DNA of 64,000 nt from Anthoceros angustus (lineage: Eukaryota > Plantae > Anthocerotophyta), in the NCBI GenBank assembly GCA_010909165.1, contig MU008188.1:496001-560000 (forward strand), written 5' to 3'. The notes beneath the pieces are model-generated. The model saw nothing but the letters and a program-made list of their open reading frames with translations. It was not told where the DNA came from and made no database searches. The position numbers and the translations under genes were made by a program. Shown here piece by piece: positions 3,400 to 43,170 of this stretch; position 1 is the first letter of the stretch; the number at the start of each line of letters is the position of its first letter.

Positions 3400-6300
3400 A
3401 AAAAAGAGAAGGGAAGAGGCTAGCTGTACAGGCCGCCACATCACCGGCATATGTCGCAACCCGTCGTGTGCATTTTGCCATTGCAGAAGAATGTAGGGAT
3501 GATGAAGGTTCGATTTGTTCCCTTCAGATTGGTAGTGATGATGCTCGTTGTGAAAATCCATATTGTGAAAATCCATATAAGGAAAGCGGTCACACATGTC
3601 ATGGGAGCGACTCCTATGCGCTGCTGCTTGAAGGCCTTCAAAAGAGTGTATTGCCTTGGGCACAGGAGGTATGAGGAGCTAAAGAGCAGAGTCATTCTGG
3701 AATCACCTTGGGATGGATTCGGACCAAACCCGAAGGCACAATCTACTTATCGCTTGATGCCATTTTCTTGGATGGACAATGCTTTTACGTTTATGGCCGA
3801 GCGGCTTCCTAATTTGGAAGTTTTCAATCTACCCGACACTACAAAGTTGGAAATATGGCGTTGTACAAGCGTCGGTCAAGCTCTACGCATTCTATGAAGT
3901 ATCCATGGTTCTTAAAAGTGTGGAGAAGCAACTTCCCAAGAGTAAAATCCGAAGTCCAACAGATTTTCAACATGCTCGCTTTGTGCAGTGAAGAGCACTA
4001 TAAGGAATACAAAGCACAAGCAAGATCAAGGTAAATTGCACCAATGTGTCCTCCATGTGCTTGTTCCTCTTGTTGAATGCCACTATCATCATGCACGGAT
4101 GTTCCTCTTGTGTCTCTTCATAATGGATGCATGTCTTGCATGTGCAATACTTACCATGGATTGGGTTTCCCAAAAAGCGCTTCCAGGGCGCCGGTGGCCG
4201 CGCCTCAGCGATAAAGCCCCTCTCGGATGAGGCGCGGCCGGCCGGCGCTGAACTCCTGATGATGATTGACCCCTCCAAATCATCATGAGCGAAGGGGAAG
4301 GCGCCGGCCGGCGCCCCCACTCTCGTGCATGAATGATTGGTAGCGGCGAAAAAAGCTTTTGTATAGGTTGGATGGTTCTCTGTCGGGTGATGGAGATGGG
4401 GGTCTATTTTATTGCTGATTATGATGTTTTGTAGGCACGAGAAATTTAGTTGCCTTGGAAGCACATCGTGCGGCTCCACCGAGGCAATGAAAATGGCTAA
4501 ACAGGAGCAAGAGCTATGTGGAGCCACATAAGTATATCTGCTATCAATTGATGGAATGGACCAAAAAGACAGAGATACCTCATCTTCTCCGGTAGAAAAC
4601 CTAGAGAGTGTCGTATTCGATCCACGTGGTTGGGTGCATGATTCACAACTATACGCTTAAAAGCTAGAGCCTATTTGCATTATGCGAATTTGCGGAGCAG
4701 CGAATCTTCGATCACCATTATTCGGGCGTTATACATAATTACGAGGGTGTCTGCCAAGAGTTTTGTATTTGCGGTTGGACAACACATGCGGGAGAATAAG
4801 AACCAGCTTTTGCTATCGAACATGCTTGTTGATATGGGTACTTTTGAAAAGTGAAAGTGGGATTCCTTTTGGTCGGACATACTCATGATCAAATCGACGG
4901 ATGTTTTCTTGCTTCTCCAAAAGCTTGAAACATAAAGAAGCTCACGCTTCCGCATTGTCGAGATCTTGATGCAAGCGTACACTCCAACACCGAGGTCAAG
5001 GTATTGGTAGTGGCGACTTCGGTCATATGTGTGGCCCATTACACAAGGCCGAGAGGACTCGATTATGGGCGGCGAAAGATTGAACAACCTATCGTTCCGG
5101 CCGGTTTAAAATAACACGTGAAGAGAAAGCGGACCGTGGGTTTGTGATGTTAAGGAGCAAGCAATACTCGACCTCGCCTCGATTGGGAAGCGAAGGGGTT
5201 TGGAGTTTTGAAATTTGTGCCTTGGACACTATAATTGCGCCCTTGATGCGGTCGAGGATAAAAAGGAAGCCAGATATTATCTCCAAGCTGCGTTGCTCAT
5301 CTAAAGGGCGGTCTTGGAACTTAGGCCTTATGTGACATCAAGGAGTTTTATGGTGGGAAGCTTTACGGGTGGACCAGAGGAGATTCTTATTGTGTGGAAA
5401 ACAACATTGGCCTTGTGCTACACAAAACCTTGGAGGTGGTACTCGGATCGAAGTGGATGCAGTAACCTCTGCATGTTCGGATGAAGCACTCCTGGAGGAG
5501 GCATTCTTGAGGAGCTCCCACAGATATGTATTTGGGAGCATACCAAAACCAGGAGGCAACAACAAGAAATGTCACGGTTGAATGGTGATATCGCGAGAAA
5601 GCGGGAATGTTAGTTGCGGTTCCAGCGGACACAGACGCAAAATAGACCCTTTTGGATTGGGAAGGTGACCGTGTTAAACTACATGCACCAGCCTCACTTC
5701 CTTGTTCATTGGTACAGGCCGAACACAGATGCGTATGAAGGAGGAGTCGTGGAAGAATATTTAATCGGAGGGATGGCAGCAGCGGGAGAAGGGGCGAAGG
5801 CTATCCATCGAAAGAATATCCAACAAGTTTTTGTTCACCAAGCGGTCATCCTCTATTATGGGTTCACTTGACTAGCGGAAACATTTATGCGTTGTGGATA
5901 AGAAGGCCATAAGATAAGTTAATTGAATTGCGAGGCTTTATTCAACCGGTGAGTCAAAGTGCAACCGAGGGCGTGAAGATGATGGTCATGATCAAGCGAA
6001 GATGATGGCGTGGAGTCGGTAAGAGTAGAAACACTCGAATGTTGGGTCATCTTGACGGGCAATTGATGGTGAGGTTATCGTCAAGCTCCATTCACAGTAG
6101 TTTGAGTGCACATTTCTGCGGTGCAAATTTCGAATAGTGTCGCCCATGATAGGATTTTGGTTGTGGCTATCCTCGTGAAGTTGTAGACTTGACATAGTTA
6201 ATATCTTCCAATTTTCAAGAGTTTTCCATTACATTCGGAAGGACATGTGGGGAGTGTGGCCATAGGGCGCGGCATTCGGCATAATGTAAGGCATACGTTG

Positions 6301-6866
6301 GAGGTGGCATGTTGTTCCTCATGCGTCATGTCGGGAACTAGTTTCGCACACTTTTTAAGTTCATCGATTGCGGCGTGAGCATGTGAATATATTTTGCCAC
6401 AATTGAGGGTCGGAAGCCATCCCCCACCCCAATCCTAAAGTCTTTTGTAAACAAATCCCACTAAGGCACCCCTCTCCGCCATTCGCAAGGATCGTCACAT
6501 GCGGAGAAGGGCCGGGCGTCCTTCCTCTCCTGCTGCTTGCCCGGCGGGTCATGTCATCAAAGTTCATCACCGTTCTTTTTGGATTTCTTTTTTTGTTGAG
6601 CGAAAAGGCGTGATTCTGCGGCAATGGCCCTTGTCATGGGTCTTAAATGTGCCCCAAATGAGGTTAACTCTTACACCATAACCCTTCGCGGGCATGAAAT
6701 GGATCTTAAATCACTGGTTCATACGAATTGTCACCCTTCTTTTCTGCCTTAAATTGACCCATACCCCAAAAACCACGAGTTCAATACCCATGTGAAACCC
6801 CTTCAGGAGATATATGTCACAAAACCCTCTTCGTGAACATTCACCCCCTTCGAAAGATATCATGTT
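3400..6866 (+). mobile_element. Degenerate Sola-like DDD transposase element with right terminus at 6866
   Basis: Frameshifted motifs: WRSNFPRVKIRSPTDFQ-CxxC (~3920-3990), SIDGMDQ (4544-4565), LPRVLYLRLDNTC-ENKNQ (4751-4806), KVGFLLVGHTHDQID-MFSCFSK (~4850-4922), PHFLVHWYRP (~5690). Probable intron ~4031-4434. Terminal 23-mer cccccttcgaaagatatcatgtt (6844-6866) matches the nested element's TIR at 19/23. Left end not found. Confidence 0.75.
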
Positions 6867-11231: not shown

Positions 11232-14200
11232 ATGTCTGTCCGTATGCCGGAGCACACGAGCTTATGGCTGGCATCGGCTTCTCTGCCCGGCGTCCCTCCC
11301 GTCTGCCCTCTCCCTAGGTATCAAGCTGCAGCCGCTCGGCGTTCCAGGCAATTCTCCCATAACGCTCCTGCTACATTCACTTGCTTGTATCCGGCATGGA
11401 ATCGGACTGTGTCCTCCTCGCTCGCCCGGCGGAACCTTCCTTCTCTGCGGACGACAGGTGGTGCCAGCAGACCGGCGCGGACGCCACTTCTCCTCCTCTC
11501 TTATTGCGCGTTCTCGGATTCCCGGGGGACGTGGAAAATTTCTAGGATATCCTCCCACGGCAGAATTCACCATGGCCACACTCACACGGACGAGGGAGCA
11601 GGTGGGCATCACGACCAGCATGACGGCCATGAAGCGCGCGAAGGTGCTGAGAACTGTTGTGCCCATGAGCACGAGCATGAGCATGAGCATGAGCATGGGC
11701 ACGGGCAGGGGCAGGGGAATGAGCATGGCCATGGGAATGGGCACCATGGGCATTCGCACTCCCACCACACAGGTCATTCGCATGAGACCACGCGATTGAA
11801 TTCGATGCAACAGGCTCTGCAGAAGCTGGCGCAAGTGCTGTGGATCACTAAGGTTGCTGATGTCTTGCGGGAGAATCTCTCTGTCTGCTTAATTTCCTTG
11901 GCTCTGCTGCTCGTGGGAGCAGCCGTGCCGCTGGTGTGGCGCAATCCGCTCGCCACCACTCTGCAGACTGCGCTTGCGGTGGTGGCATTTCCTTTGACCG
12001 CGGTACCGTCTCTCTCTCTTGGTTAAATCACGCTCGCATTCGCCTCTTCTCTTTCGATTAAAATCGTATTGGATGGAGGAGGAAATTGGTATCTCTCGCC
12101 CATGACTATAAGTGTGTCAGGCAATGGCAAGCTCCCTCCGAGCACTGGTGGCCTGCTTTCTCAGTAATTTGTTTTTTGGAACTTCATTTTCACACAGGTG
12201 TCAGGGGTATTGGACTCGACAATTGCCATCGCTGGCGGAAAAATTGACATCCATGTTCTCATGGCACTCGCATCAGTTGCCTCTGTGTTCATGGGGAACA
12301 TCTGGGAGGGTGGCCTGCTTTTGACAATGTTCAGCCTGTCCCATCTCGGTATTTCGCAAGACGCATCGCTGTTGTGGTCGTATGGGTCTCTGAGTCCGGT
12401 TTGAGGTACAGTAGGAAGCTGTGTTGCGTCATGATCGGCATTCATGCAGCAAAACACAAGATCTTTTTCCTTGGTGTTACGGGATCGTGAGACGTCGAGG
12501 TTTTGTGCCATGTTGCCACTGCTCTGTGATAGGTTCATGCTTTTCAGTGTAGAGGATGGTTAAGTCCATTCAATCGATTTCTTGTGTGTTGTTTGATCTT
12601 CTTAAGTTTGAACCTGCAGTGGAAGAAGGCTTTACCAGGCGAGCATTAGGCGACGTGAAGGCGTTAAGGGACAGCAATCCAGAGTCTGCTCTTGTCCTGG
12701 ACGACTTTGATAACTTATCTTGGGCAGCTCTATCGACTGCAGCTTACAAGTCTTTGCCAGTTACTCGGGTGGAGGCTGGATCGTATCTTCTGGTGAAGGC
12801 GGGTGAGGTATGCACACTCCAGTGTCATATGAGACTGCTGCCACCATTGATATAGCTGTACTCCATGGAAGTACTTCCGGACCAAGTTAAATTGTTCATG
12901 CGCAAAATGGCAATGCTGGAGATGTGGAAATGAATCCAAACGTGAATACTTCTGTGCTTAAGACCTGTAGCTCTCACACCGCAGAAATGCAAGGTGCTTT
13001 CTCAGTGGGTTTCTTGCTTTCCTTGAGAACAAGAGTTAGAGCCTCGACAATACTCAGAGTGAAGCATTTTATCAGAGATATATGGACACGTCAGTCTTTT
13101 GCAAAGTTGTTTGTTTCAGCATTTCTGACGTTCTGCTCTTTGGTCTCAGACAGTACCTGTAGATGGGGAGGTAGCTATGGGGCATTCCATGATAACGGTA
13201 GAACATCTTACTGGTGAAGTGTACCCTCTGGAGAAGAAAATAGGTGATTTGGTTCCTGGAGGAGCCAGAAACTTGGACGGCATGATGGTAGTGAAGGTTA
13301 GCTTGTCTGTTGTCAAAGACTATGGCAAGTACAGTGCAACACGTTTGGAGAACGTTATTATTAATAATTAATTTCTTTGTATGTACTAACAGGCTACCAA
13401 ATCATGGAATGATTCCACTGTTGCAAGGATTATGAAAATTACAGAAGATGCCCAGCTGAACCGCCCTGTTTTGCAAAGATGGCTGGATCAGTTCGGGGAG
13501 CAATATAGCAAGGTGGTAATTGCACTGTCTGTTGTGCTTGCTGTTTTGGGCCCAGTCATCTTCAAGTGGCCCTTATTGGGTTCATCAGGTCAGCAATGAC
13601 ATGCTTGCCTCAGTAGTTTGGTTAATGGCCTTTGCTCTCTGCGGGCGTTCTCTCTTTTGTCTTGGTGGGCGAGAACTGAGATTTTGTGTGCATGCGCCAG
13701 GGGTACGGGGCTCAATCTACAGAGGGCTGGCTTTGATGGTTTCAGCTTCTCCATGTGCGCTAGCCGTTGCTCCACTTGCCTATGCAACTGCCATCAGTGC
13801 TTGTGCAAACAAGGTCCAGTAACATGCTCTCTTCCACACTTTGTAGTTTTGACCAGAAGTGGCTCTGAGATGCTGTGAGGTAACTATCATGGAGCCACAT
13901 TCAAGTTTCTCTATCATTGGCCACACAAAGATTGAGGATTCTTGAAGCTTGGAAAGTCCTCCTTTCAGTGAACGAAAGGATTCTTCTTGCAGTAGTGGGT
14001 AGAATCAGTCCTCCTATTGTTCACCATATGTGTTTCATTGCAGGGTATCCTTCTGAGAGGTGGTGAAGTCCTAGATTCTGTGAGTGCATGTGACACGATT
14101 GCATTTGACAAAACAGGTACCCTTACCACTGGTGAGCTTGAGTGCAAGGCAATTGAACCTCTCCATGGCCATCTGAACCAAGGCCAGAGTGGTACACCGG

Positions 14201-16281
14201 ATGGCATTTGTTGCAATCCCAGCTGTGTTGCAGAAGCTCTTGCTGTTGCGGCAGCTCTGGAAAGGGGTGCCACTCACCCTATTGCTCAGTAAGCTCCAGC
14301 TTTGCTTAAATGGTTTTCCAGTAAAGTGAACGTACCTGGGAGTGACCTTCAAAGGTGTCTGTCATTCCAAAACCTTGATCACTATTTCCATGACCATCTT
14401 ACAGGGCAGTATTGGAGTACAGCGAGGGGAAAAAGTTGCCTCCTTTTGTTGTTCAGAACTTTGAATCATTTCCGGGCAAAGGATTGGCTGCAGATATCGC
14501 ACCAGTAGAGGTATACATTCCAGATTGCTTGGTTAGCTTATTTTTAACCGAGTCAAACAAGTTCATAAATTTTTCACGTCATAGATCTCTGAAATGCATA
14601 TTGACCGGTCAAGTTAACTTTACACATTTTCCCGAGATGGCTACGCAATTGACTGAGATGCTCAGGTTCTAGCTATGACTGTAATTCATTCCTACTGCTT
14701 TAATCTTTGAGTTGAGTCTTGTGAATGTGTTTTCTGTTTCAAGCGGTTCCTTGATTTTTTATAGTCAGGTGATGGGGCTTCGCACAGAGCATATCTGGGA
14801 TCTCTGGAATTCGTTGGATCGTCATCTGGCTTTGATACAAGCTCTCGGCGGCTTGAGGACTCACTAGAAGCATCGCCTTTTAGCAGCGAACTTGTGCGGG
14901 CAGCTCTCTCTGTTAATAGCAAGGTCTTGGCCTAAATCAGAAGTGGGGTTTTCAAGTGCTTTTATCTGGTCTGTACACTATTAACACGTGCCTTGCTGTG
15001 AGATGCAGATCACCATCTTTCACTTGGAAGACAAGTTGCGGGCACATAGTGCTGATGTGATCTCATCCTTAAGAAGGCACGAGGGCCTGAGGTTGATGAT
15101 GTTGACGGGGGATCATCTGGCTAGTGCTCAAAGGGTTGCTAGAGCAGTTGGTATTGATGAAGTCTACTCAGGTCTGAAGCCTGAAGAAAAGCTGCAAAAA
15201 GCAAGAAGTTTCTCTGGTAAGAGTGCCCTGGCTGTGCAGATTTGTATCTGTTGAAGACTGAATGCAAAACTGGTTTTGATGGAGGGAGGGATGGTTTTGG
15301 TGCTCCTCTGATGATTCTAGTGGCCTGCTATCTGACATTCATATGTTACATTGTTGAGCAATGACAGTGTGTTGTGATTTTTCTCCAATCTTCTCTTGTT
15401 GGGGATTCTGCACGCAGCCTGCCTGTGATGACAACTGGTGTGTCTGACTCGAGTGCTATGCAGCCCGGGATGGCTCAGGAGGCCTCATTATGGTTGGCGA
15501 CGGAATCAATGATGCACCAGCCTTAGCAGCTGCGACAGTTGGAGTTGTGCTTGCACAGCGTGCAAGTGCAACAGCTGTGGCTGTTGCAGATGTGCTCCTC
15601 CTCCAGGACAATATTGACGGAGTGCCATTTCTGATTGCAAAAGCTCATCAGACTACAGCAGTGGTATGCTCTATTTTGAAGTCACATCTTATCTGATTTG
15701 GCTGGCAATCTGTCTCGTAGACTAAGCGCTTTATCCTCGCCATTGCTTGTCATGCAGGTCAAACAAAGTGTGTTTCTTGCACTTTTTTCGATCCTGGTTG
15801 CATCTCTACCTTCAGTCTTGGGAATGCTGCCACTTTGGCTCACGGTTTGTTCCTTTGGTCCCCAGGACTCCGTGTGTTATGTACTTGTTTTAAGTGCATC
15901 TGCTTTTCGTGTTCAGATGTGAACGTTCATCGTTCTGAATCTGTACAAGATACATGAATCATGAAGCCAGAATTCGATGTTACGGGGTGGCTCTTTGTGC
16001 TAGACAGCCTAGATACCACCTCCCACCTCTTTATATGTCTTTGAAACTTATGTAACTTGAGTCTGTTCTACGCTTGACAGGTGTTGTTGCACGAAGGCGG
16101 TACCTTACTGGTGTGCCTGAATTCAGCCCGTCCTTTGAGGAGTCCAAGTGACGCGTGGGTTTTATCCCGTTCAGGCAAGGTATCTAAATTCCGTAGTCGA
16201 ACTGCTCACTTATGGAAACAGCTGGTAAAACGGCTGATGAGCAGGTCAAGCAGGCCTAACTTGCAATCTGGTCCTGCATGA
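11232..16281 (+). CDS. HMA1: Chloroplast heavy-metal P1B-4 ATPase (HMA1 orthologue), multi-exon
   Basis: Exon 1 (first in-frame ATG 11232, to 12002) encodes a transit-peptide-like region and a His-rich tract. Later GT-AG exons give IHVLMALASVASVFMGN, EHLTGE, GARNLDG, MVSASPCALAVAPLAYATAIS (SPC motif), DKTGTLT, LMMLTGDH, GDGINDAPALAAATVG and LLHEGGTLLVCLNS; stop at 16281. Closely parallels AtHMA1 as I recall it. Confidence 0.97.
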
Positions 16282-17402
16282 TCTTCACAACTTGGCCGAT
16301 CTGGGTGGGCCGCTCCTAGATAGACGGCATAGAGTTAAGCGTCTCCAGATTGGCTCTTAAACAACGTGGGTGTGGTTGCCTAATGTGCGGAGCATCATGA
16401 CAAGTATTGTATCGGCGATGAGTCACGAAGATCTTGGTGACGCAACTTACGTGGGGCGGTGCGGCTGTCTGAGTTATTTTTTCTTCTTATCCGCACCGAC
16501 AACGGACGAGGTGTCCCATCCGCTATGAATCAGAATCTGCATTATTCCAGTACTTATAAGCTTCGCAGATCCCGATCTCTCTTACGTGGATTCTCATTTC
16601 TAATGTATAAAATATGTATTAATATGTAGAATATAATCTATGCCCTGCAGGAGGCCGTGACCCTTCAAAGTCCGCGAGTCTCTATACCGTTGTTTACTGG
16701 GTAGGCAAAAACGCATTTAGCTTATGCTAAGGGGGTATTCGGGACGACATCAAAATTTGCGCCCATAGAAATGGGAGCCGCTCACTAAAATTCGTCGGGG
16801 GTTTAATGCTTGGTTGCCTTGATGTGGCGGGGCCTACCATCTGTCTCTCTCATCCGTGACTTGCGACCCGGAGCGCGAGCCGAGAGCCGGGTGAGTGGCT
16901 TTCCCATTGATACCCGATGGCCATTAAGGCAAATACGGTCTGCACACCCGTGCGGACGCGCAACCCGATGTACCGCGCAACCCGATGAACCGGCTTCATA
17001 TCGACATACACGACATAGCAGCAACATCAGTTTGTGGTTCCCGTCGCATACTCGGGTTTTTGCACTCGTTCTCTGTACCTGCATTTCCATACCCGGCTTT
17101 CCATACCCGGGATGAAAGAATTCCAAACCCGTCGGTTTGAAGTCCAGGTTTCAAATCAGGTTTTCAAAGCTATGCACTTCTCATCGCGGTGAACCGATCT
17201 GAAAAGAAAGCGGTGCAGATGCGACAAGACGCCTAATATGCTGCCCGGTGCAGATGCGGAGACCAGGCCTAAAACCATGTTCATGAGAGACCATCTGGAT
17301 TCACCGCGCATGTAGATCAGTACCTCGCAGTGAGTGCAAAAACTCGCATCTCACGTCCTCTTGTTAGTTTTGAGAGACTATTCCTTCACACGATACTGTT
17401 CC

Positions 17403-21090: not shown

Positions 21091-21160
21091 ATTATTATTA
21101 TCCGTAAATCACATTCCCCTATCCCAAAGAGAAAAACCCTAACCCTAACCCTAATCTCAA

Positions 21161-24100
21161 CCTTTAACCAAAATCCCTATCCCTAATCACAAGAGCGCTT
21201 GAAAGCAAAGATTGAACATGCCGCTCTAAACTCGCATCTCACGCTATGCAAATGACGGAGTTCACATACCATAAGCTTGTGAGCGTGGTGCACTTTGGAG
21301 CCTTAAACAAGTATTATTAGTAACGTAAGGGTAGGGACGAGCGGCTTTCTCATGTCCCGTGTTGGTGGTATGTAGCACAGGCCAAAACTTTTGGCCACCG
21401 GTTCGGATTATGCATGACTCACCATAGCATGGTGATGGGCAAGCACATACATAGGTACATGTCGTGGCCGTGGAGGGCCGTCATGACACACGTACCTTAA
21501 TGGCCATCTGCATCCATTTGCAAGCGGGTGAGTGCACCATACACATGGAAACACGTGACCGTTGCGAACACATGGGCACATACATGAGAACAGGGACGAC
21601 ACCGTGAGTGGCGAAGAATCCAAAGATGTAGAGCACGTGGGAGTGAGGCCTGGTATACGAGATGCACGTTATTATACATATCTTTTGCTGGACATAACCG
21701 AATTTTGGTACAGGGTAATCAAATTGAAGCTTGTCTGAAGGGCGACAGGATGAGCTATTGCTCAAAGCCAAAAATATAGAGCATTCGAGGTTTAGGCCTG
21801 GTAACACAGATGCTCATTTTTGTTCATAACTTATGCTAGACACAACTAAAATGTAATACAGGGCAATTAAATTGAAGCTTGTTCAGAGGGCTACAGAATG
21901 AGCTATAGCTCATTCCGTGTAAACATATGTGGAACGCGTACTGAGAGTTTGAAATTCAGAGAGCACAAATTGTTCAGCGGGCAATTTTGACGAACACCAA
22001 TATCCAAGTTCGCATACAGATAGCTGAACATGATGAGTTTGAAACTGGCTTTTCGATGACCTATCTTACGAAATTTATGGCCAAGTAAAGCATGAACTAG
22101 CCACAAATCTCATCCTTCCCTCTCTTCAAGATAACTACTTTCAGCACCTTGGTGCAACACCTCTAGCATCTTTGGCTTCTGCCGGCGGGTTGCAGGCTTC
22201 CAAGTAGTCATCTCCACAATACATTTTTTCCTCTTCAAAGAATCTCCAAAGCCATTGTCCAATTTGAGTAAATGGCCTTGAAATGTGGACACTACACCAT
22301 TGACACATTTTCGTGCCTGCAACTGTTTAACTTGGAGAAGCAACATAGAAGCTGCTGCATGAGTATGCTGGAGCAAGGAAGCATCAGCATGCACCATTCC
22401 CCACACTTCTTTACATATATTCTCCAAGCTCTGGTATGATGCAACGGCCTTCACTTGTGGCTTTACGTTGCCAAATGGCAGTGCTGTTGGCAATGATTCA
22501 GTGTCTTCCTGAGTTGTGAAAATAGGCGTGTCCGCCTCGTGCACCGCCTGTTCACAAGGCATATGTACTGGTCCAACAGAATGCGGAGAGACATGGACAT
22601 GTCCTCTTCTAGCCATAGCATAACTAGCTGTGTGTGGATACCAATTCCCCTTTGAGGTATAATATCTTAGCTTGGTGCTTGCAAAAGAAACCTTGAGTGC
22701 CTCTGGGACAATTAGAAGTCCAATCTGCACTTACAATGAAGATGGTATAGATCAACGATCGTGCAACTCCTCACAAAAGCTAGTCCATCAATTGTGGTTG
22801 GTAATGTGACAGAGTCGGAATGGATTGGGAACCCAAGATTGCATTGTCCACGATTGCTGCTTCCCTTGCATTGTACCTGAATCCATGCTCCTTTGTGAAA
22901 TGCTTATACCAGTAGATTTTGCTTACTGTTTCCACGAGAGTGTGGAGCAACCAATCCAACCATCTTCCTCGCAGCCTAACAAAATCATGGCACAAAGCAA
23001 AGACTTCAAAACCCATGCAAGGCTTCGATAGCAGAGTTACAATCTTGGCTGCGTGCCTCATAGTTCGACACCCTTTAACCAAAATCCCTATCCCTAATCA
23101 CAAGAGCGCTTGAAAACAAAGATTGAACATGCCGCTCTAAACTCGCATCTCATGCTATGCAAATGACGGGAGTTCACATACCATAAGCTTGTGAGCCAGG
23201 ATGCACTTGGAGCCTTAAACAAGTATTATTAGTAATGTGTAAGTGGGTAGGGACGAGCGGTTTTCTCATGTCCCGTGTTGGTGGTACGTAGCGCATGGGC
23301 GTCAAAACTTTTGGCCACCGGTTCGGATTATGCATGACTCACCATAGCATGGTGATGGGCAAACACATACATAGGTACATGTCGTGGCCGTGGAGGGCCG
23401 TGCGGACACACGTGCCGGCCTTAATGGCCATCGGGTATCCATTTGCAAGCGGGTGAGTGCACCATACACATGGAAACACGTGACCGTTGCGAACACATGG
23501 GCACATACATGAGAACAGGGACGCATACCGTGTGAGTGGCGAAGAATCCAAAGATGTAGAGCACGTGGGAGTGAGGCCTGGTATACGAGATGCACGTTAT
23601 TATACATATCTTTTGCTGGACATAACCGAATTTTGGTACAGGGTAATCAAATTGAAGCTTGTCTGAAGGGCGACAGGATGAGCTATTGCTCAAAGCCAAA
23701 AATATAGAGCATTCGAGGTTTAGGCCTGGTAACACAGATGCTCATTTTTGTTCATAACTTATGCTAGACACAACTAAAATGTAATACAGGGCAATTAAAT
23801 TGAAGCTTGTTCAGAGGGCTACAGAATGAGCTATAGCTCATTCCGTGTAAACATATGTGGAACACGTCGAGAGTTTGAAATTCAGAGCACAAATTGTTCA
23901 GCGGGCAATTTTTGAACACCAATATCCAAGTTCGCATACAGATAGCTGAACATGATGAGTTTGAAACTGGCTTCGATGACCTATCTTACGAAATTTATAG
24001 CCAAGTAAAGCATGAACTAGCCACAAATCTCATCCTTCCTCTCTTCAAGATAACTACTTTCAGCACCTTGGTGCAACACCTCTAGCATCTTTGGCTTCGC

Positions 24101-24992
24101 GGGTTGCAGCTTCCAAGTAGTCATCTCCATTTTTCCTCTTCAAAGAATCTCCAAAGCCATTGTCCAATTTGAGTAAATGGCCTTGAAATGTGGACACTAC
24201 ACCATTGACACATTTTCGTGCAACTGTTTAACTTGGAGAAGCAACATAGAAGCTGCTGCATGAGTATGCTGGAGCAAGGAAGCATCAGCATGCACCATTC
24301 CCCACACTTCTTTCCATATATTCTCCAAGCTCTGGTATGAAGCAACGGCCTTCACTTGTGGCTTTACGTTGCCAAATGGCAGTGCTGGCAATGATTCAGT
24401 GTCTTCCTGAGTTGTGAAAATAGGCGTGTCCGCCTCGTGCACCGCCTGTTCACAAGGCATATGTACTGGTCCAACAGAATGCGGAGAGACATGGACATGT
24501 CCTCTTCTAGCCATAGTAACTAGCTGTGTGTGGATACCAATTCCCCTTTGAGGTATAATATCTTAGCTTGCTGCTTGCAAAAGAAACCTTGAGTGCCTCT
24601 GGGACAATTACAGCAAGTCCAATCTGCACTTACAGTGAAGATGGTATAGATCAACTTCTGATCAGTGCAACTCCTCACAAAAGCTAGTCCATCAATTGTG
24701 GTTGGTAATGTGACAGCCGAGTCGGGAATGGATTGGGAACCCAAGATTGCATTGTCCACGATTGCTGCTTCCCTTGCATTGTACTTGAATCCATGCTCCT
24801 TTGTGAAATGCTTATACCAGTAGATTTTGCTTACTGTTTCCACGAGAGTGTGGAGCAACCAATCCAACCGTCTTCCTCGCAGCCTAACAAAATCATGGCA
24901 CATAGCAAAGACTTCAAAAACCCATGCAAGGCTTCGATAGCAGAGTTACAATCTTGGCCTGCGTGCCTCATAGTTCTGACACCCTTTAACCA
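21161..24992. repeat. 1,911-bp tandem duplication bounded by the 10-bp microhomology cctttaacca
   Basis: cctttaacca at 21161, 23072 and 24983. 21161-23071 aligns with 23072-24982, including the 3' part of transposase C. Confidence 0.9.
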
Positions 24993-26644
24993 TAAGGGAA
25001 GCACACTGTGCCATTGTTTCTTGAAATACTCAATGAAACTCGGAGCGCTGTCTCCAAAATCTACATACACTTGTTGTAGCATTTTGTGGGCCTCATCTTT
25101 AGTTTGCCACCGTCGGGATAGGTACATAATGTGACCAAGGCGCTGGAAGATTGCAACCCGAACTTCCCAGTTCCAGACCTTCAATAACAAATGTCGTAAC
25201 CAGCACTTTCTGACATGCCACAAGCATAACAACACTGGAACTGTCACGCCCCATACATTGTGAATGGCTGCAATTTCTGCAGCTGCATCGTCTACCAGAA
25301 AGGCACTTGGTTGCCATTCCTGGCAGTGCCTACCAATATGGTCCTTGAAAGCTTGCAACCAAGAGTGAATATCTACTGTCCCACTATCTGTAACAATCCA
25401 GGCAACAGGCATTCCGTTATAGTAACTATCAAACACCAAAAGTGTGTACAAGTGAAACTTGTATTTGTTGGTCCCGAACGTGGCGTCCATGGATATGACA
25501 TTCCCATTCCCAAACTGCAGAATCATGGAACGCTGGAAATCAGTTTGCAAGCCAATCACTAAGGGGGAGGAAACAGAATGATACCAGACAAGGTCCTTGT
25601 GAGCCTCTATCCACAAACCAACACTAATCTCATCGTTGGGGTGATACTGATAGAACCCTGGAAACAATTGAGAGGCAATGTTGTTAATGTCGTGCGGCTG
25701 TAAAAAATCATCGCGACAAGGTTCATAATCACTAGCTTGTGCTTTCAATTCTACTTGCTCCACATGCTCGAGGTATATCTGCCTCTTTGTTACACCAGCA
25801 AATAGAGGCTGTCTCATAGCAGCACGGATGTCCTCACTTAAACGGGCAGCAAACCTTGAGCGAGGGTCTGCAGTATACTGAAGTCCGTGGCAGATTTGTC
25901 CAGATTGGTCTACATGTTCAAATGAATCACGAAACACAACTGCTAGTTGTGGCGGATAGCAAGTCGCTTCACATCAAAGTGGTACTCGCAACCATGTTTG
26001 ATACTCTGACCTCTCAAGATCTTGGCTTTGCGTTTTCCTACACCGCTTGAAGCCTGCTTTTGTCGCATTATCACGAAGATCGCCTTTCCCAAATGCACAC
26101 CAGTATTTCGTGTGGCACAAATAAGCCCAAACATTAGTTTTACGGCTGCTGTTGGAGGCAACTTGCTTCTTATCCGTCTCCTTCCAAAAGTATGTGGGGA
26201 ACTGCACATTCTTGCCTTAATACGATAATTTTTGAAGGGGGGATATACTGACCCCCTTCGGCCGAGACAGCACCCCCTTGTCACGAAGAACACCTTACCT
26301 AGAACAGCATATGTGCCCTACTTTGATAATGCACACACCTTTCTCGAGGTCATATCTTTGATAAAAGATGCACTTTCAAGTCTACACCCGAGAACTGGAG
26401 CATGAGGGTGTGGGCCCGCTTATGCTTTAGTAGAATGCATAGAGGGCTGCCATTTTCATATGTTTATTACAACCGAAAACTTTTACTTTCAAGTGGTGGA
26501 ACACAATGAAAACAATCTGTACTAGCGGAGTCTCATTTAAGTGGTCGTGAGAACATTGCAACAAACAATCAAGGAGGAAGTGGTCATCAAGATCGACAAT
26601 AGCCATTCAAGAGTGCGGCTGGCGACTCATCCATGCCTTGCGCC

Positions 26645-28858
26645 AACCGAGTCAAGTACCACCGCCATATTCGAGGCGGTCCATATCCTCCGCCTCGGTT
26701 GTCGCTCTCCATTGCTTGCTCGCCTTCAATAGTATCATTCTTGGGCCCCGACGGTGTCGATCGCCACACAAAGATCTAGGGTCTCACCTCATCCAAAAGG
26801 TCGCCATGTGGTCTTCAACCTTCCGCACTCAATGCAACCACTTGGGCTTTAAGGCAATGCCAACGTCCTTAAAATGAACAAAGTTAGTTGCCCATGCGCC
26901 CATGCAAGCATCCTTAAAATCAACAAAATTGAATTGTTGAGGAGGCACGAGGTTTGAACACAAACCTATTCATTACTACACTTATTTCCCAAACACTAGA
27001 CCAACAGTCCATGGTTGAAATAATTCTTGAGGCGCTAAATATTTATTTTCTGGAAGCAGGTAGAGGAGGCGCCGGCCGGCGCCCATGGGCAAGGCATGGC
27101 GTGTTGGTGGGGGCGGCCGGCCCATGGGCGGCGGCCGGCGCGCCATGGGCGGTGTGCTAGGAGGGCGCTGGCCGGCCGGCGCCCATGGTGTGCTAGGGGA
27201 GGCGCCGGCCGCCCATGTGGTGTGTTAGGGGAGGCGCCGGCCGGCGCCCATGGGCGGTGTGCTAGGGGAGGCGCCGGCCGCGCCCATGGGTGGTGTGTTA
27301 GGGGCGCCGGCGGCCGGCGCCCATGGGCAAGGCATGGCGTGTTGGGGAGGCGCCGGCGCGCCCTTAGCACCATCCTACGGTGCATACGGTGAAGCTAGGG
27401 GGACAAGAAGGAACGGCAGTATCCTATCACCGATGGAAGGTGTGGCCCATTTGCGTGAAGGGTTAAAAGATTTGCATCCATAGGTGACGCTGAAGAGTAT
27501 AAGTGGTGGGAAGCCTTTGGACCGGAAGGAGATTGCTATCATTGTGGAGAATAACATTGGGCTAGTGCTACGTCCTTGGAAGTGGTTTTCACGTGCGAAG
27601 TGGATCATACTGACCACTTCAAGTGCGGATGAAGCTTTGCTAGATGAGGCATTATTGAGGGACCTCCACGTGATATGTATTTGGGGCATATCAAAATGCG
27701 GAAGGCAACTGGAAATGGCACGGATGAATGGGGACATAACAAAACCGAGTCAAGTACCACCGCCATATTCGAGGCGGTCCATATCCTCCGCCTCGTTGTC
27801 GCTCTCCTCCATTGCTTGCTCGCCTTCAATAGTATCATTCTTGACGGTGTCGATCGCCACAAAGATCTAGGGTCTCACGACCCTCATCCAAAAGGTCGCC
27901 AATGTGGTCTTCAACCTTCCGCACTCAATGCAACCACTTGGGCTTTAAGGCAATGCCAACGTCCTTAAAATGAACAAAGTTAGTTGCCCATGCGCCCATG
28001 CAAGCATCCTTAAAATCAACAAAATTGAACTGAGGAGGCACGAGGTTTGAACACAAACCTATTCATTACTACACTTATTTCCCAAACACTAGACCAACAA
28101 TCCATGGTTGAAATAATTCTTGAGGCGCTAAATATTTATTTTCATGAGGTGGGGAGGGCGCTGGCCGGCGCCCATGGGCAAGGCATGGCGTGTTGGGGGG
28201 CCGGCCCGGCCCATGGGCAAGGCATGGCGTGTTAGGGGAGGCGCCGGCCGCCCATGGGCAGTGTGCTAGGGGAGGCGCCGGCCGCCCATGGTGGTGTGCT
28301 AGGGAGGCCGGCCGGCCCATGGGCGGTGTGCTAGGGAGGCGCCGGCCGGCCCATGGGCAAGGCATGGCGTGTTGGTGGGGGCGCCGGCCGGCCCATGGGT
28401 GGTGGTGTGCTAGGGAGGCGCCGCCGGCCGGCGCCCATGGGCGGTGTGCTAGGGAGGCGCCCGGCGGCGCCTCCCTTAGCACCATCCTACGGTGCATACG
28501 GGTGAAGCTAGGGGGACAAGAAGGAACGGCAGTATCCTATCACCGATGGAAGGTGTGGCCCATTTGCGAAGGGTTAAAAGATTTGCATCCATAGGTGATC
28601 AAGAGTATAAGTGGTGGGAAGCCTTGGACCGGAAGGAGATTGCTATCATTGTGGAGAATAACATTGGGCTAGTGCTACAGCCTTGGAAGTGGTTTTCACG
28701 CGTAAGTGGATCATACTGACCACTTCAAGTGCGGATGAAGCTTTGCTAGATGAGGCATTATTGAGGGACCTCCCACGTGATATGTATTTGGGGCATATCA
28801 AAATGCGGAAGGCAAGCTGGGAAATGGCACGGATGAATGGGGACATAACGGAACCGAG
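26645..28858. repeat. ~1.1-kb tandem duplication inside the nested element (aaccgag microhomology)
   Basis: aaccgag at 26645, 27743 and 28852; the two units align. Confidence 0.88.
27068..27363. repeat. GC-rich array of palindromic motifs (GGCGCCGGCCGGCGCC and CCCATGGG); second array ~28156-28473
   Basis: Repeated ggcgccggccggcgcccatggg-type units separated by tgtgctagggagg or caaggcatggcgtgttgg spacers. Confidence 0.9.
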
Positions 28859-30581
28859 AGGGATGTTTACGGCGGTGCCGTGCAATACGGACATGCATAA
28901 CAGGCCATTACGGATTGGGAGGTCATTGACGTGAAGCTAAACGCACCACGACCTCACTTTCTTATCCACTAGTATCGGACCGAGCACATAGATGCGTATG
29001 AAGGAGATATGTGCAGAACATAGTCCGCCAGAGTGGTAACCCATCCGTCCAATGCCGAGGAAAAAGGGAATAAGATCCATTACCTAAAAACATACAGAGG
29101 TATTTGTGAATGAAACATATCCCAGACATGGGTTTGTGTTGAACGACAAAACATCCGTATGTGGACAAAAAGCGATAAGGGATAAGCTCATGAGTTGCGT
29201 GGCTTCATACAACTGCGAGTGAAAGTGTCATCAAGATAGTGATGACAATGGAGGAGAAGTCGGACCAAGTGATGACGATGGATTGAACTCGGGATGAGTG
29301 AAACCGAAATCTGCTTTTTCCGGGTCCCGAGTTAATGTTGTAAGTCCGGTCGATGTTTCGTGTTAGGAAATACCGTCTGTGGCTTTTGTGGTGTCATAAC
29401 AAAACCACATTTCCATCCCAAACCGAAGTTTACTGCTCGCCCGGCAGAACGGCCTTCCTCACCGCTCCTACTTTGCATCATTCCCTAGGTTCGAGTTTCA
29501 TACCACCATTCGACACAAACATTGCCGGATGGAAAGTAGTAACTTTCCGGGTGACACCTTTTTGGAGCTGTTTTCCGCAATGCCTTCAAAACGCTGTTTT
29601 AGGGCCCATCAAAAACCCCCTTCAGAGATTATTTGCGGAAAACCCCCTTCGAGATTATTCACCCCCTTCAAAAATTATCGTGTTCCTTCTCCTAACACCA
29701 AGTCAGACACCCTGTTCCATGGAATAATGGCAAATCTAGAGATAGCGGGCACACAATCCTTAGAAGCAACTTGATACCGTCTTGCTATAACAGTGGGTGA
29801 AAACTTGAGATGTTGCGTGTTGAACAAGCCACCTGGCGGCTCTTGCACCTCCCAACCGTAGGGAAGATCTTCAATCTCCATCTTAGTTGCCATTTCAAGT
29901 CACAATTCGGTGTTCAGAACACGGGCTGCACGGAGGTATTGCTTAATCGAGTTCAGTGTGAAGTGAACCCGCCAAAAATGATGCTTACTTTCTATTTCAA
30001 ATGGAAACGTGTTTTAGGGTTTGTTTCGCCTCTGGTTATGTATGACATGCATGCCATGCGCAAGCAGACATGGTCATAGCATGACGTCATGCTCATGACA
30101 TGAGGCATGACATGAGCCTCTTGGCGCTTAAGACCGGCAGGCCGTGCCGGTGGCAACGGAGAGGAGAGAGACTGAGTGGTGGGCCCCACTAGATCAAGGC
30201 AACCTCGCATTAAACCCCCGACGAACTATAGTGACCGGGGAAATGGGATGCCATCGGGGTTCTGGATATACCCCACACACGTTTCGATCTTGGTATATTT
30301 CCATTGCTAGCTTGATGCTCAACAACAAAAGCAATGATATTTATGTCCACTAAGGGTAGCTGTCCTTTTTCGGCACATAAAAAAACTTAAAATTAAATTG
30401 GGTAGAGTCAAGTTAGAAAGTACCTAAACGAAGTGGGCCCTTCTAGTATTTAAGCCGACGTGAGAAAACTGATATTACACTGAAAACTTGAACTAGTTCT
30501 ACTGATTATTATCTATTAGTTGTACATCAAATAACATGCTAGCCTTGCTATAGATTTTCTGTCAGTTTAACGTCAAACGAC

Positions 30582-32379
30582 ATGGTCGCTTTACAACCCT
30601 TTGGCTATAAGAGGATTTCAAGTTTCCACAATATGGCTAAAGTATCGAGAGAGCATTATATCTTTATTGTTGGAACAATATGGATGTCAATGTTTGCGAT
30701 AGCTTGGGTGTCACTCCTTGCTTTGATTTTCTCTCGTACTGTACTAGGAGGTGAACAAGGCGCTCATTTGCAGGTATGCATGATTCCTTTAGTTTTCCAT
30801 ATCTCAAAACTTGGTAACATTTTGACCAACAAAATCATATGAATTGAAATCACATTTGATCAGGTTGAGAATGGCTTTGTTATAACACAAACTTTAGAAA
30901 TTGTGAAGAAATCAACAAGCATCATCACACAAGCGAGCAAAATGATTACAGTGAGCTTGGAAGATGATGGTTCTGATTTCAAGTACATCCAAGATGCTAT
31001 TAATAGTGTGCCTGATAATAATGATGCTCAGATCATCATCAAGATTGCACCCGGTTTCTATATGTGAGTATCATATTACAAGTATATCTAACTTCTAGCA
31101 GTGGAATATGTTGTTGGGTGCCTAACATATAATATGTTTATGTAGGGAAAAAATAAAAATTCCTTCTACCAAACCCTACATAACATTAGAGGGATCAGGG
31201 ACATCAACAACTAAAATTACATGGAATGATATTGCAGCAACTGCAGGTACTTACAATAGTGCAACAATAGGTATCGATGCTAATAATTTCATCGCGACTA
31301 ATATAACTTTTGAGGTATGTAAGATTTTCTCATTCTATATTTTTATGTGAAACTTATGATTGATTAACTCATATCTAACTGATGCTTGTTTGATTTATAA
31401 GAATTCAGCACGAGTTGCACTTCCAGGCGAAGTAGGGGAGCAAGCGGTTGCATTAAGAATAGGCGGGGACAAAGCTCAATTTGTCAATTGTAATTTTATT
31501 GGTGGTCAAGACACTCTTTTTGATTTCTCAGGAAGACATTATTTTTTGAACTGTATAATCATTGGTACGGTTGATTTTATTTTTGGTAACGGTCAATCTA
31601 TATATCAGGTATTTTTTCATAGCCGTGATCATTTGGAAATTGAATTTCTTATGATTATATGTGATTTATGCTTTTGAGTTCATGTATCTGATGAAGTACA
31701 CCTCATTTATACTTAAAATATGCTCGTTTTATAGGGTTGTACCATTCAATCTATTGCAAACACCACTGGAGCAATAAGCGCCCAAAAGAGAGACTATGAG
31801 TATGAAAGCACTGGATTTGTTTTCAATGATTGTTGGGTGAATGGAACTGGCTCAAACTACTTAGGTAGAGCGTGGGGAAATGCCTCTCGGGTAATATATG
31901 CAAATTCATATATTGAGGACATAATTGACCCACAAGGGTGGAGCGATTTTAACGTCCCTATTAGAGACAAGTAAGTTATCTTCCCTGACAAGAGTTTACT
32001 TTAAAATAATTCACAACTATGAAGATAGGTTCATGATTTATGCTTATTCACATCATAGTCTTCGGCAAATAAACTTCTAAGCATTCATATCTATAGTTCA
32101 CTTTAGACATTATATAAGATATTTCATATTTTTTAGACATAATTTTGTTAGTTAGTCCTAGTTAAAACCAATTTTGTAAAGCTTGTGCTAAATCTGTTTT
32201 GTTTTTTTAGAACTGCTTTTTATGGGATGTACCAATGCTATGGTCCAGGTGCCAATAGTACTAACTTTGTCACTTGGGCACATGAGCTAACATGGGAACA
32301 AGCAGCTCCTTTTCTTAATCTGACTTTTATAGACATTGAGAACGAAGGATGGGTTACATTTGGTGAAACTATATATTGA
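30582..32379 (+). CDS. Pectin methylesterase without PMEI pro-domain, 6 exons
   Basis: Exons ~30582-30773, 30864-31063, 31146-31314, 31402-31608, 31735-31970 and 32211-32379 splice in frame at GT-AG sites. Motifs [42 protein letters not shown] and GWSDF; hydrophobic N-terminal segment. The start could be 30582 or a later Met. Confidence 0.95.
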
Positions 32380-40761: not shown

Positions 40762-43170
40762 AACCGTCTCTCTTTTGTTTAAATCACGCCCACCTTCGCC
40801 TCTTTTCTTTTCATTGAAAACATCTTTCGTAAAGGAGAAAGTTTACTTCCTTTCCCTCTTCGCCGACGACGTTAAGTGTGACAGGCAATGGCAAGCCAGT
40901 CCTTTGAGCACTGGTGGCCTGCTTTCCAATGACTTGTCTTTTGGATCTTCATTGTCACACAGGTGTCAGTGGCATTGGACTTGACAATGGCCATTCCTGG
41001 TGGAACAAATGACATTCATGTTCTCTTGGCACTCGTGTTGCCTTTGTAGTTGTGGGGAACATCTGGGAGGATGGCTTGCTTTCGACAACGTTCACCCTGT
41101 CCCATCGGGTATTTCGCAAAACATGTTGCATGTCGCTGTTCTGTTCGTATGGGTCTGAGTCTGGGTTGAGGCACATTAAGAACCTATGTTGCGTCATGAT
41201 TGGCATTCATGCAGCAAAACACAGAAGCTTCTTCCTTGGGTTACGGAATCGTAAGATCTCAAAGATTTTGTGCCATGTTGCTACTTCACCGTGATAGGGT
41301 CATACATTTCAGTTTAGATTTTTGTTAAGTCCTTTCAAGAGATTTCTTGTATGCTGTTTGAACCTCTTAAGTTTGAACCTGCAGTGGAAGAATGCTTTTC
41401 CAGGTGAGCATCAGGTGATGTGAACGCATTAAGGGACAGCAATTCAGAGTCTGCTGTTGTCCTGGACGACTTTGATAACTTAGCTTGGACGGCTTTATCC
41501 ACGGCAGCTTACAATTCTCTTGCCAGTTACACAGGTGGAGGCTTGCTCGTAGCTCCTGGTGAAGGCGGGTGAGGTATGCACACTCCAGTGTCATATGGGA
41601 TTGCTTCCACCGTTGATATGGCTGTACTCCGTGGAAATACTTCTGGGCCAAGTTAAATTGTTCATGCTCAAAATGGCAATTTGAGATGTGGAAGTAAACC
41701 CAAACGTGAACACTTTTGTGGTTCAGACCTGCAGAAATGCAAGGCGCTTGTTCAATGGGTCCTTTGCTTTTCTTGAGAACCAGAGTTAGAGCCTCAACAG
41801 TACTCAGAGTGAAGCATCTTATCAGAGATCTATGGACTCCGTCAGTTTTTTGCAGAGTTGTTTGTTTCAGCATGTTTATGTTCTGCTCTTTGGTCTCGGA
41901 CAGTTCCTGTATCGAGGAGGTAGCTCTGGGGCATTCCATGATCATGGTAGAACATCTTACTGGTAAAGTGTCCCCTCTGGAGACGAAAATAGGTGATTTC
42001 GTTCCTGAAGGAGCCAGAAACCGTGGAGGACATGATGGTGGTGAAGGTTAGCTCTTCTGTTGACATCAACTATGCCAAGCACATTGTGACCTTCGCTGCT
42101 GAACAACACCATTAGAGAACGCGATTAATTTTCTTGTCTGGGCTAACTGGCTACCAAATCGTGGAATGTTTCATCTGGGTTAGCTCATTTGTACCGAGTC
42201 AAAAACGTCATCAGATTCCTCAGTCCATAGATCTCTGAATGCATTTTGACCAGTTGAGTTATCTTTTTCCACTTTTGTGATATGGCTAGGTGATTGACTT
42301 AGATGCTCAGTGCCTTGCTATGACTGTGGATTCATGCCTGCTGCCTTTATCTTCTAGTTGAGACTCGTGAATGTGTTTTCTGTTCAAGCCGATCTTTGAT
42401 TTTTGATAGTCAGGTGATGGAGCTTTGTAAAGAGCTTATCTGGCATCCTTGGAATCCGTTGGATCGTCATGTGACTTTGATACAAGCTCTCGATGGCTGG
42501 AGGATTCACTGGAAGAATCACCTTTCAGCAGCGAACTGGTGCGGGCAGCTCTCTTTGTTTACAGCAAGGTCTTGGCCTTATTAAGAAGTGGATTTTCAGT
42601 TGCTTTCATCTGTTCTGTGCACATTATTAACACGTTCCTTACTGTGAGATGCAGATCACCATCTTTCACTTGGAGGACAAATTGCGGGCACACAGTGGTG
42701 ATGTGATCTCATCCTTAAGAATCCATGAGGGCCTGAGGATGATGATGTTGATGGGGGATCATTTGGCTCGTGCTCAAGGGGTTGCTAGAGCAGTTGGTAT
42801 TGATGAGCCTACTCAGGTCTAAAGCCTGAAGAAAAGCTGCGAAAGCAAGAAGCTTCTCTGGTATGGTACGAGAGCCTTGGGTAGCCGCTGTGCACATTTG
42901 CATCTGTTGATGTTGAGTATTATGCAAACACTGAACGCAAAAACTTTTAAGGTTTTTAATGGAAGGAGGGTTTTGATGCTCCCCCGATGACTTTAGTGGC
43001 CTGCTATCTAACATCCATAGGTTACATTCTAGTGGTGTGTGCCATTTCGAAGTCACAAGATGATCTTGATAACTTTGCTGGTCTGGGTGGGCCGCTGCTA
43101 GAGAGAGCATAAGTAAAGCATGATTTGGTTCTTAAAGAACGTGGGTATGGTTTCTGAATGTGCGGAGTTT
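40762..43170 (+). pseudogene. HMA1 (pseudogene): Truncated, intron-retaining HMA1 duplicate
   Basis: Begins at the equivalent of HMA1 intron 1 (~12004) and follows exons and introns. Frameshift in exon 2. Jumps from ~13410 to ~14528 (loses SPC and DKTGT), from ~15352 to ~15660, and from ~15686 to ~16278; ends in 3' UTR-equivalent sequence. Confidence 0.92.

Follow-up and report, generated by a model that had tools for sequence, protein, structure and literature searches.

A non-autonomous, probably Sola1-type DNA transposon nested in the transposase gene of a Mutator-like element of Anthoceros angustus

Results

The DNA analysed here (the window, 64,000 nucleotides in all) comprises positions 496,001 to 560,000 of contig MU008188.1 from the Anthoceros angustus genome assembly GCA_010909165.1. 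It contains a Mutator-like element (MULE) of about 13.5 kb, bounded by 71-bp terminal inverted repeats (TIRs) at 16782-16851 and 30164-30234 that are 86% identical. The minus-strand MULE/SWIM transposase gene of this host element is split in codons 69-70 by a nested element of 3,466 bp, located at 26219-29684. A further element, referred to below as the partner, ends at position 6866 with the right flank TAGC, while its left end lies before the start of the window. The coordinates of all features are compiled in Table 1. The nested element is, in our view, very probably a Sola1-type cut-and-paste DNA transposon that is non-autonomous and internally rearranged; it would have been mobilised in trans, have duplicated CCTT upon insertion and thereby have split the MULE gene.

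The two TIRs of the nested element are 23 nt long and differ at a single position (AATACGAT.. versus AACACGAT..); the repeat is written in full as AAYAYGATAATTTTTGAAGGGGG, and the 5' ends of the element family as 5'-AACAYGATAATTTT. A copy of CCTT stands on each side, so that the preliminary description of 26215-29688, with 23-bp TIRs, one mismatch and a 4-bp target-site duplication (TSD), was confirmed by our analysis. Beyond CCTT the two flanks diverge at once, which sets the direct repeat at exactly 4 bp. Across the 64-kb window, inverted repeats matching at 22 or more of 23 positions within 10 kb were found at three places, compared with none in 10 locally shuffled windows, and the 20-nt core of the TIR matched twice in the window against 0.01 expected. 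This means that a chance origin of the TIRs is unlikely.

In-silico deletion of 26219-29688, meaning the element plus one CCTT (3,470 bp), joins two open pieces on the minus strand, which then reads ...IPWNRVSDLVLGEGKNVQFPTYFWKETDKK... with the junction ...IPWNRVSDLVLGE|GKNVQFPTYFWKETDKK...; the predicted empty site reads ..GGAGAAGGCAAG... The joined frame starts with the ATG at 29893, runs to 24834 and comprises 530 codons, interrupted by one stop (25974-25976). These are the same letters as those given in the preliminary description for the joined strand. After a deletion of suitable length, a matching frame alone has a one-in-three chance, and for this reason the collinearity with intact relatives was tested by searching the two flanking pieces separately against homologues. 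A first protein search returned fern and Ginkgo proteins that were truncated at the N-terminus, placing the junction outside their reach; a second one, with the fern protein P0001 as query, revealed full-length members, 690-840 aa in size, among ferns, liverworts, conifers and angiosperms. In P0028, P0030 and P0032, the upstream piece (29687-29893, minus strand) ends at residue 62 and the downstream piece (25977-26216, minus strand) begins at residue 63. P0026 and P0027 display the same adjacency, bringing the number of intact homologues, which come from ferns and flowering plants, to five. The junction is represented in homologues by GE-SS-NPECPASF, GE-CS-NVECPTRF, GE-CT-KEDWPTQF and GE-SE-RSDAPTNF, and in the window by GE-GK-NVQFPTYF; the spacing GE-xx-NxxxPTxF is kept, with zero residues gained or lost. 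The motif spacing of the family given in the earlier description was right. The further claim that frame restoration independently fixes the length of the TSD did not hold: only the sum of element and TSD (3,470 bp) is fixed, since a 3-bp TSD with an element of 3,467 bp would give the same product. That the TSD is 4 bp long follows from how far the direct repeat reaches and from the element ends being symmetric (AA..TT).

The interrupted gene encodes a MULE / ZSWIM RNaseH-like catalytic domain (Pfam MULE, 1e-11; PF21056, 2e-10), and we take it to be a MULE / ZSWIM-type transposase gene, At1g60560-like. It shows several signs of decay, namely the in-frame stop mentioned above, a change of frame near 24900 evident from the list of open reading frames (ORFs), and a 1.9-kb tandem duplication (21158-23084 versus 23069-24995, 95% identical) covering its 3', SWIM-side part. 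A 26-nt near-perfect inverted repeat with the core GATACCCGATGGCCATTAAGGC was also noticed inside the host MULE, its arms (16906-16931 and 23417-23442) being 6.5 kb apart. Just outside the MULE, the ORF 31360-31677 on the plus strand is pectin-methylesterase-like and apparently an exon of a gene of the host genome.

The nested element has no transposase ORF of its own and is non-autonomous; none of its seven ORFs revealed a Pfam domain. Its interior holds a tandem duplication with a minisatellite in each unit and a remnant that shows homology to the partner in its 3' coding region; a second copy of this remnant lies at 27504-27737. Remnant and partner have in common the readings ..ENNIGLVL.., ..EMARMNGDI.. 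and ..NRPxxIG... Towards both ends short repeats accumulate: on the left, one copy of the motif lies in the TIR and an inverted copy 9 nt further inward, while on the right three direct copies begin at 29617, 29644 and 29663. These GAAGGGGG/CCCCCTTC subterminal repeats are probably binding sites of the transposase.

The right 90 nt or so of the partner align with the right end of the nested element, the TIR and three subterminal GAAGGGG repeats being common to both, and partner positions 5337-5743 are 71% identical to 28598-29006. The partner carries the remains of a transposase with several frameshifts and stops, the catalytic pieces of which are found in shifted frames: SIDGMDQ; RLDNTCG followed by ENKNQLLLSNMLVDMGTFEK; and KVKVGFLLVGHTHDQIDGCF. 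The third of these, a piece of 26 aa, matches the Pfam family DUF7869 (E = 5e-6, 26.6 bits at a cut-off of 26) at profile positions 92-111. The second piece, with its DNT, matches positions 55-77 of the same profile, in collinear order with the third. A HMMER search of 1.84 billion representative proteins with the N-terminal exon yielded four relatives at E < 0.001 (best E = 2e-7), all of them short unnamed fragments, and no full-length named relative. A look-up in the ESM Atlas gave scores under 0.9 and was uninformative. No related loci were found in metagenomes, where a scan for the TIR pattern gave one chance match (L001, 31% GC) devoid of other similarity. Upstream of the partner transposase, inside or beside the same large element, a direct repeat of about 700 bp was observed (18-686 and 1740-2445, 85% identical).

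Table 1. Coordinates of the nested element, the partner element and the interrupted host gene within the window
Feature	Position	Strand	Remark
Nested element, left TSD copy CCTT	26215-26218		preceded by G; a different base precedes the right copy
Nested element, left TIR AATACGATAATTTTTGAAGGGGG	26219-26241	+	22/23 complementary to right TIR
Nested element, left subterminal GAAGGGGG / CCCCCTTC copies	26234-26280		hairpin-forming pair and variant copy
Nested element, tandem duplication	26645-28858	+	two ~1.1-kb units, 26645-27749 and 27743-28858, 88% identical
Nested element, minisatellite in unit 1	27127-27328		GC-rich, 36 bp
Nested element, minisatellite in unit 2	28165-28468		GC-rich, 34-39 bp
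Nested element, ~400-bp remnant	28598-29006	+	homologous to partner 3' coding region (5337-5743, 71%)
Nested element, right subterminal CCCCCTTC repeats	29614-29661		third copy inside TIR
Nested element, right TIR, reverse complement AACACGATAATTTTTGAAGGGGG	29662-29684	-	22/23 match to left TIR
Nested element, right TSD copy CCTT	29685-29688		directly outside right TIR
Partner, decayed transposase, probably of Sola1/DUF7869 type	3580-4925	+	several frameshifts and stops
Partner, transposase N-terminal exon	3583-3894	+	
Partner, transposase D1 'SIDGMDQ'	4532-4657	+	
Partner, transposase D2 'RLDNTCG'	within 4739-4885	+	
Partner, transposase 'ENKNQ..'	4792-4851	+	
Partner, transposase D3 'VGHTHDQID'	4848-4925	+	
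Partner, right terminus	6775-6866	-	AACATGATATCTTTCGAAGGGGGTG.. read inward
Host gene, MULE / ZSWIM RNaseH-like catalytic region	24834-25937	-	368 codons; Pfam; fern and Ginkgo homologues
Host gene (MULE/SWIM family), piece downstream of insertion	25977-26216	-	GKNVQFPTYF.., 80 codons, then in-frame stop 25974-25976
Host gene (MULE/SWIM family), N-terminal piece upstream of insertion	29687-29893	-	69 codons, ends ..LVLGE

Discussion

Members of the Sola superfamily, according to Bao et al. 2009, reportedly combine a 4-bp TSD with terminal inverted repeats; both features are present here, in a single copy. The transposase of Sola1 is a DDD enzyme with an RNase H-like fold. From a match of motifs by eye to a published Sola1 protein, we infer that the core of the partner transposase belongs to Sola1. 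This protein, the transposase of Sola1-1_Ec32 from Ectocarpus, reads ..MMDGANQ.. and QVDNTVAENKNN..MVGHTHIQIDQIF (..QVDNTVAENKNNYLMGILAAMVGRGIMRTVTLCFMMVGHTHIQIDQIF..), and the window offers RLDNTCG, ENKNQ.. and LVGHTHDQIDGCF; a comparison by eye gives identity at about 20 of 48 core positions. The strings 'VGHTH' and 'ENKN' occur once each in the whole transposable element (TE) protein library of the Ectocarpus paper, in each case within the section of the file containing the Sola1 transposase. The termini of Sola1-1_Ec32 itself are AACCG-CGGTT and its TSD is 4 bp long; in blastp, it matches the Repbase moss element Sola1-1_PPa best (PMC12477816). Taken with ORFs free of Pfam domains, and with termini and an internal stretch common to both elements, the DUF7869/Sola1-like core of the partner supports the non-autonomous Sola-like character that had been proposed for the nested element.

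Several points weigh against this assignment. The step from DUF7869 to Sola1 is a comparison of motifs by eye, not a formal alignment, and forms the weakest link of the argument. Both the termini and the TSD length were derived from one insertion, the sole complete copy within the window. The left end of the partner lies outside the window and its transposase is dead, which leaves a working source of transposase hypothetical. In addition, the TSD CCTT is unlike the AWWT target preference of insect Sola1 (PMC3845634), as is the right flank TAGC of the partner. The insect elements start with GGACCG, and their preferred AWWT targets have been called a hallmark of Sola1 (PMC3845634). The TSDs of Ectocarpus Sola1 are biased toward ending in A (PMC12477816); since these likewise depart from AWWT, that preference is not universal. 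At the termini, the AACACG../AATACG.. of the nested element compare with AACCG in Sola1-1_Ec32 and GGACCG in insect Sola1; with the alga they share the first three bases and no more.

Other superfamilies were considered on the basis of their termini and TSDs. For CACTA/EnSpm (CACTA termini, 3-bp TSD), ends drawn at CACGA/TACGA leave the flanking triplets TAA and TTC. The right border GTGTT|CCTT lacks both the TTA/TAA repeat of PIF/Harbinger and the TTAA repeat of piggyBac and Kolobok. The direct repeat stops at 4 bp, short of the 8 bp of hAT and the 9-11 bp of Mutator/MULE.

If the Sola1 assignment is correct, a Sola1 transposase supplied in trans would have bound the terminal and subterminal repeats containing GAAGGGGG, excised the element and inserted it at a 4-bp staggered cut, the repair of which would have duplicated CCTT. 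The element landed in codons 69-70 of the minus-strand MULE/SWIM transposase gene and split it. Its internal remnant of about 400 bp would derive from the 3' coding region of an autonomous relative and have been doubled by the 1.1-kb tandem duplication. The host gene sequence must, by definition, predate the insertion.

Where the insertion took place is less certain, and the preliminary description was too firm in placing the mobilisation after the arrival of the MULE. The element might have entered an ancestral copy of the MULE, which later transposed to the present site carrying it along, an order of events that we consider the less probable one, yet deserving attention. Nested insertions fixed among copies have been reported for the giant elements of Ectocarpus (PMC12477816), and the 71-bp TIRs of the host MULE can still be recognised. 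These host TIRs, however, are only 86% identical, and the stop, the frameshift and the 1.9-kb tandem duplication of the host gene suggest an old, dead copy, whereas the nested element has a perfect TSD and TIRs identical at 22 of 23 positions. The contrast between a decayed host and nearly perfect repeats mildly favours insertion at the present locus.

It is improbable that we are dealing with a genuine TIR transposon with a 4-bp TSD from another or unclassified superfamily, such as Ginger1, Academ or a new group, for which the similarity to the DUF7869-bearing neighbour would merely reflect captured sequence present in both. The comparison by eye and the non-AWWT duplication discussed above would suit such an origin, as would the fact that the N-terminal exon of the partner found just four weak relatives among 1.84 billion proteins. 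However, the similarity to the partner covers the termini and subterminal repeats, which are the parts recognised by a transposase, and the partner core both reaches DUF7869 and matches motifs of Sola1-1_Ec32 that occur once each in the TE protein library of that study. Moreover, the ends of Sola1-1_Ec32 likewise begin with AAC and are accompanied by 4-bp TSDs. No integrase signal (Ginger) or helicase signal (Academ) was seen. That the 3.47 kb represent no transposon insertion at all, but an intron, or a rearranged segment whose inverted repeat arose by chance, is hardly credible: although any deletion of suitable length joins two frames one time in three, the minus-strand borders GAAGG|AACACG and TATT|AAGGCAAG show no GT on the 5' side, inverted repeats of such quality are absent from the shuffled windows, a conserved motif spans the junction without gain or loss of a residue, and a homologous terminus is present elsewhere in the window, on the partner at 6866.

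Read as a Sola1 derivative, the nested element resembles Sola1-1_Ec32 (Genome Biol 2025, PMC12477816) in its 4-bp TSD and AAC-starting termini and, through the partner, in the transposase core motifs DG..Q, (Q/R)xDNT..ENKN and VGHTHxQID. The two differ in that the algal element measures 21.5 kb with 282-bp TIRs and has TSDs biased toward a final A, while ours is a gene-less derivative of 3.5 kb with 23-nt TIRs and the TSD CCTT from a land plant, the homology being judged by motifs and Pfam DUF7869. The Sola1_NA miniature inverted-repeat transposable elements of insects (PMC3845634) are also non-autonomous Sola1 derivatives with a 4-bp TSD that are mobilised in trans; in contrast to the 3.5 kb, AACAYGAT start and non-AWWT target described here, they are 200-700 bp long, start with GGACCG.. 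and prefer AWWT. As in other nested insertions of DNA transposons into plant MULEs and large TEs, a transposase gene is interrupted and the TSD allows the empty site to be reconstructed, but the inserted superfamily is one seldom reported in land plants.

The rarity of Sola annotations in land plants, emphasised in the preliminary description, stands insofar as such elements are uncommon; they are not new, given that a moss Sola1-1_PPa from Repbase is named in supplement 3 of PMC12477816 and that a count of 2,739 Sola copies has been published for the fern Ceratopteris (PMC6890710). The nested element is a clean but ordinary example of a type that is uncommon but already described. Its value is that of a cleanly bounded reference copy, with termini, TSD, subterminal repeats and an empty site verified by homologues, for a family mostly missed by standard plant repeat libraries; as such it helps to annotate the genome of A. 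angustus and adds no new mechanism. A bolder proposal, which we consider doubtful, is that elements with AACAYGAT ends form a land-plant lineage of Sola1 with relaxed, non-palindromic targets that was active after the host MULE had decayed, and that an intact transposase elsewhere might still mobilise. If true, a land plant would harbour a Sola1 system that is still live.

Other repeats in the window

Two repeats away from these elements were recorded as well. One is a dispersed family with two copies, located at 12011-15352 and 40767-43028, which are approximately 81% identical over about 2.3 kb. The other is a GC-rich (65%) tandem array at 61917-64000 with a period of about 730 bp and units approximately 80-82% identical, running off the end of the window.

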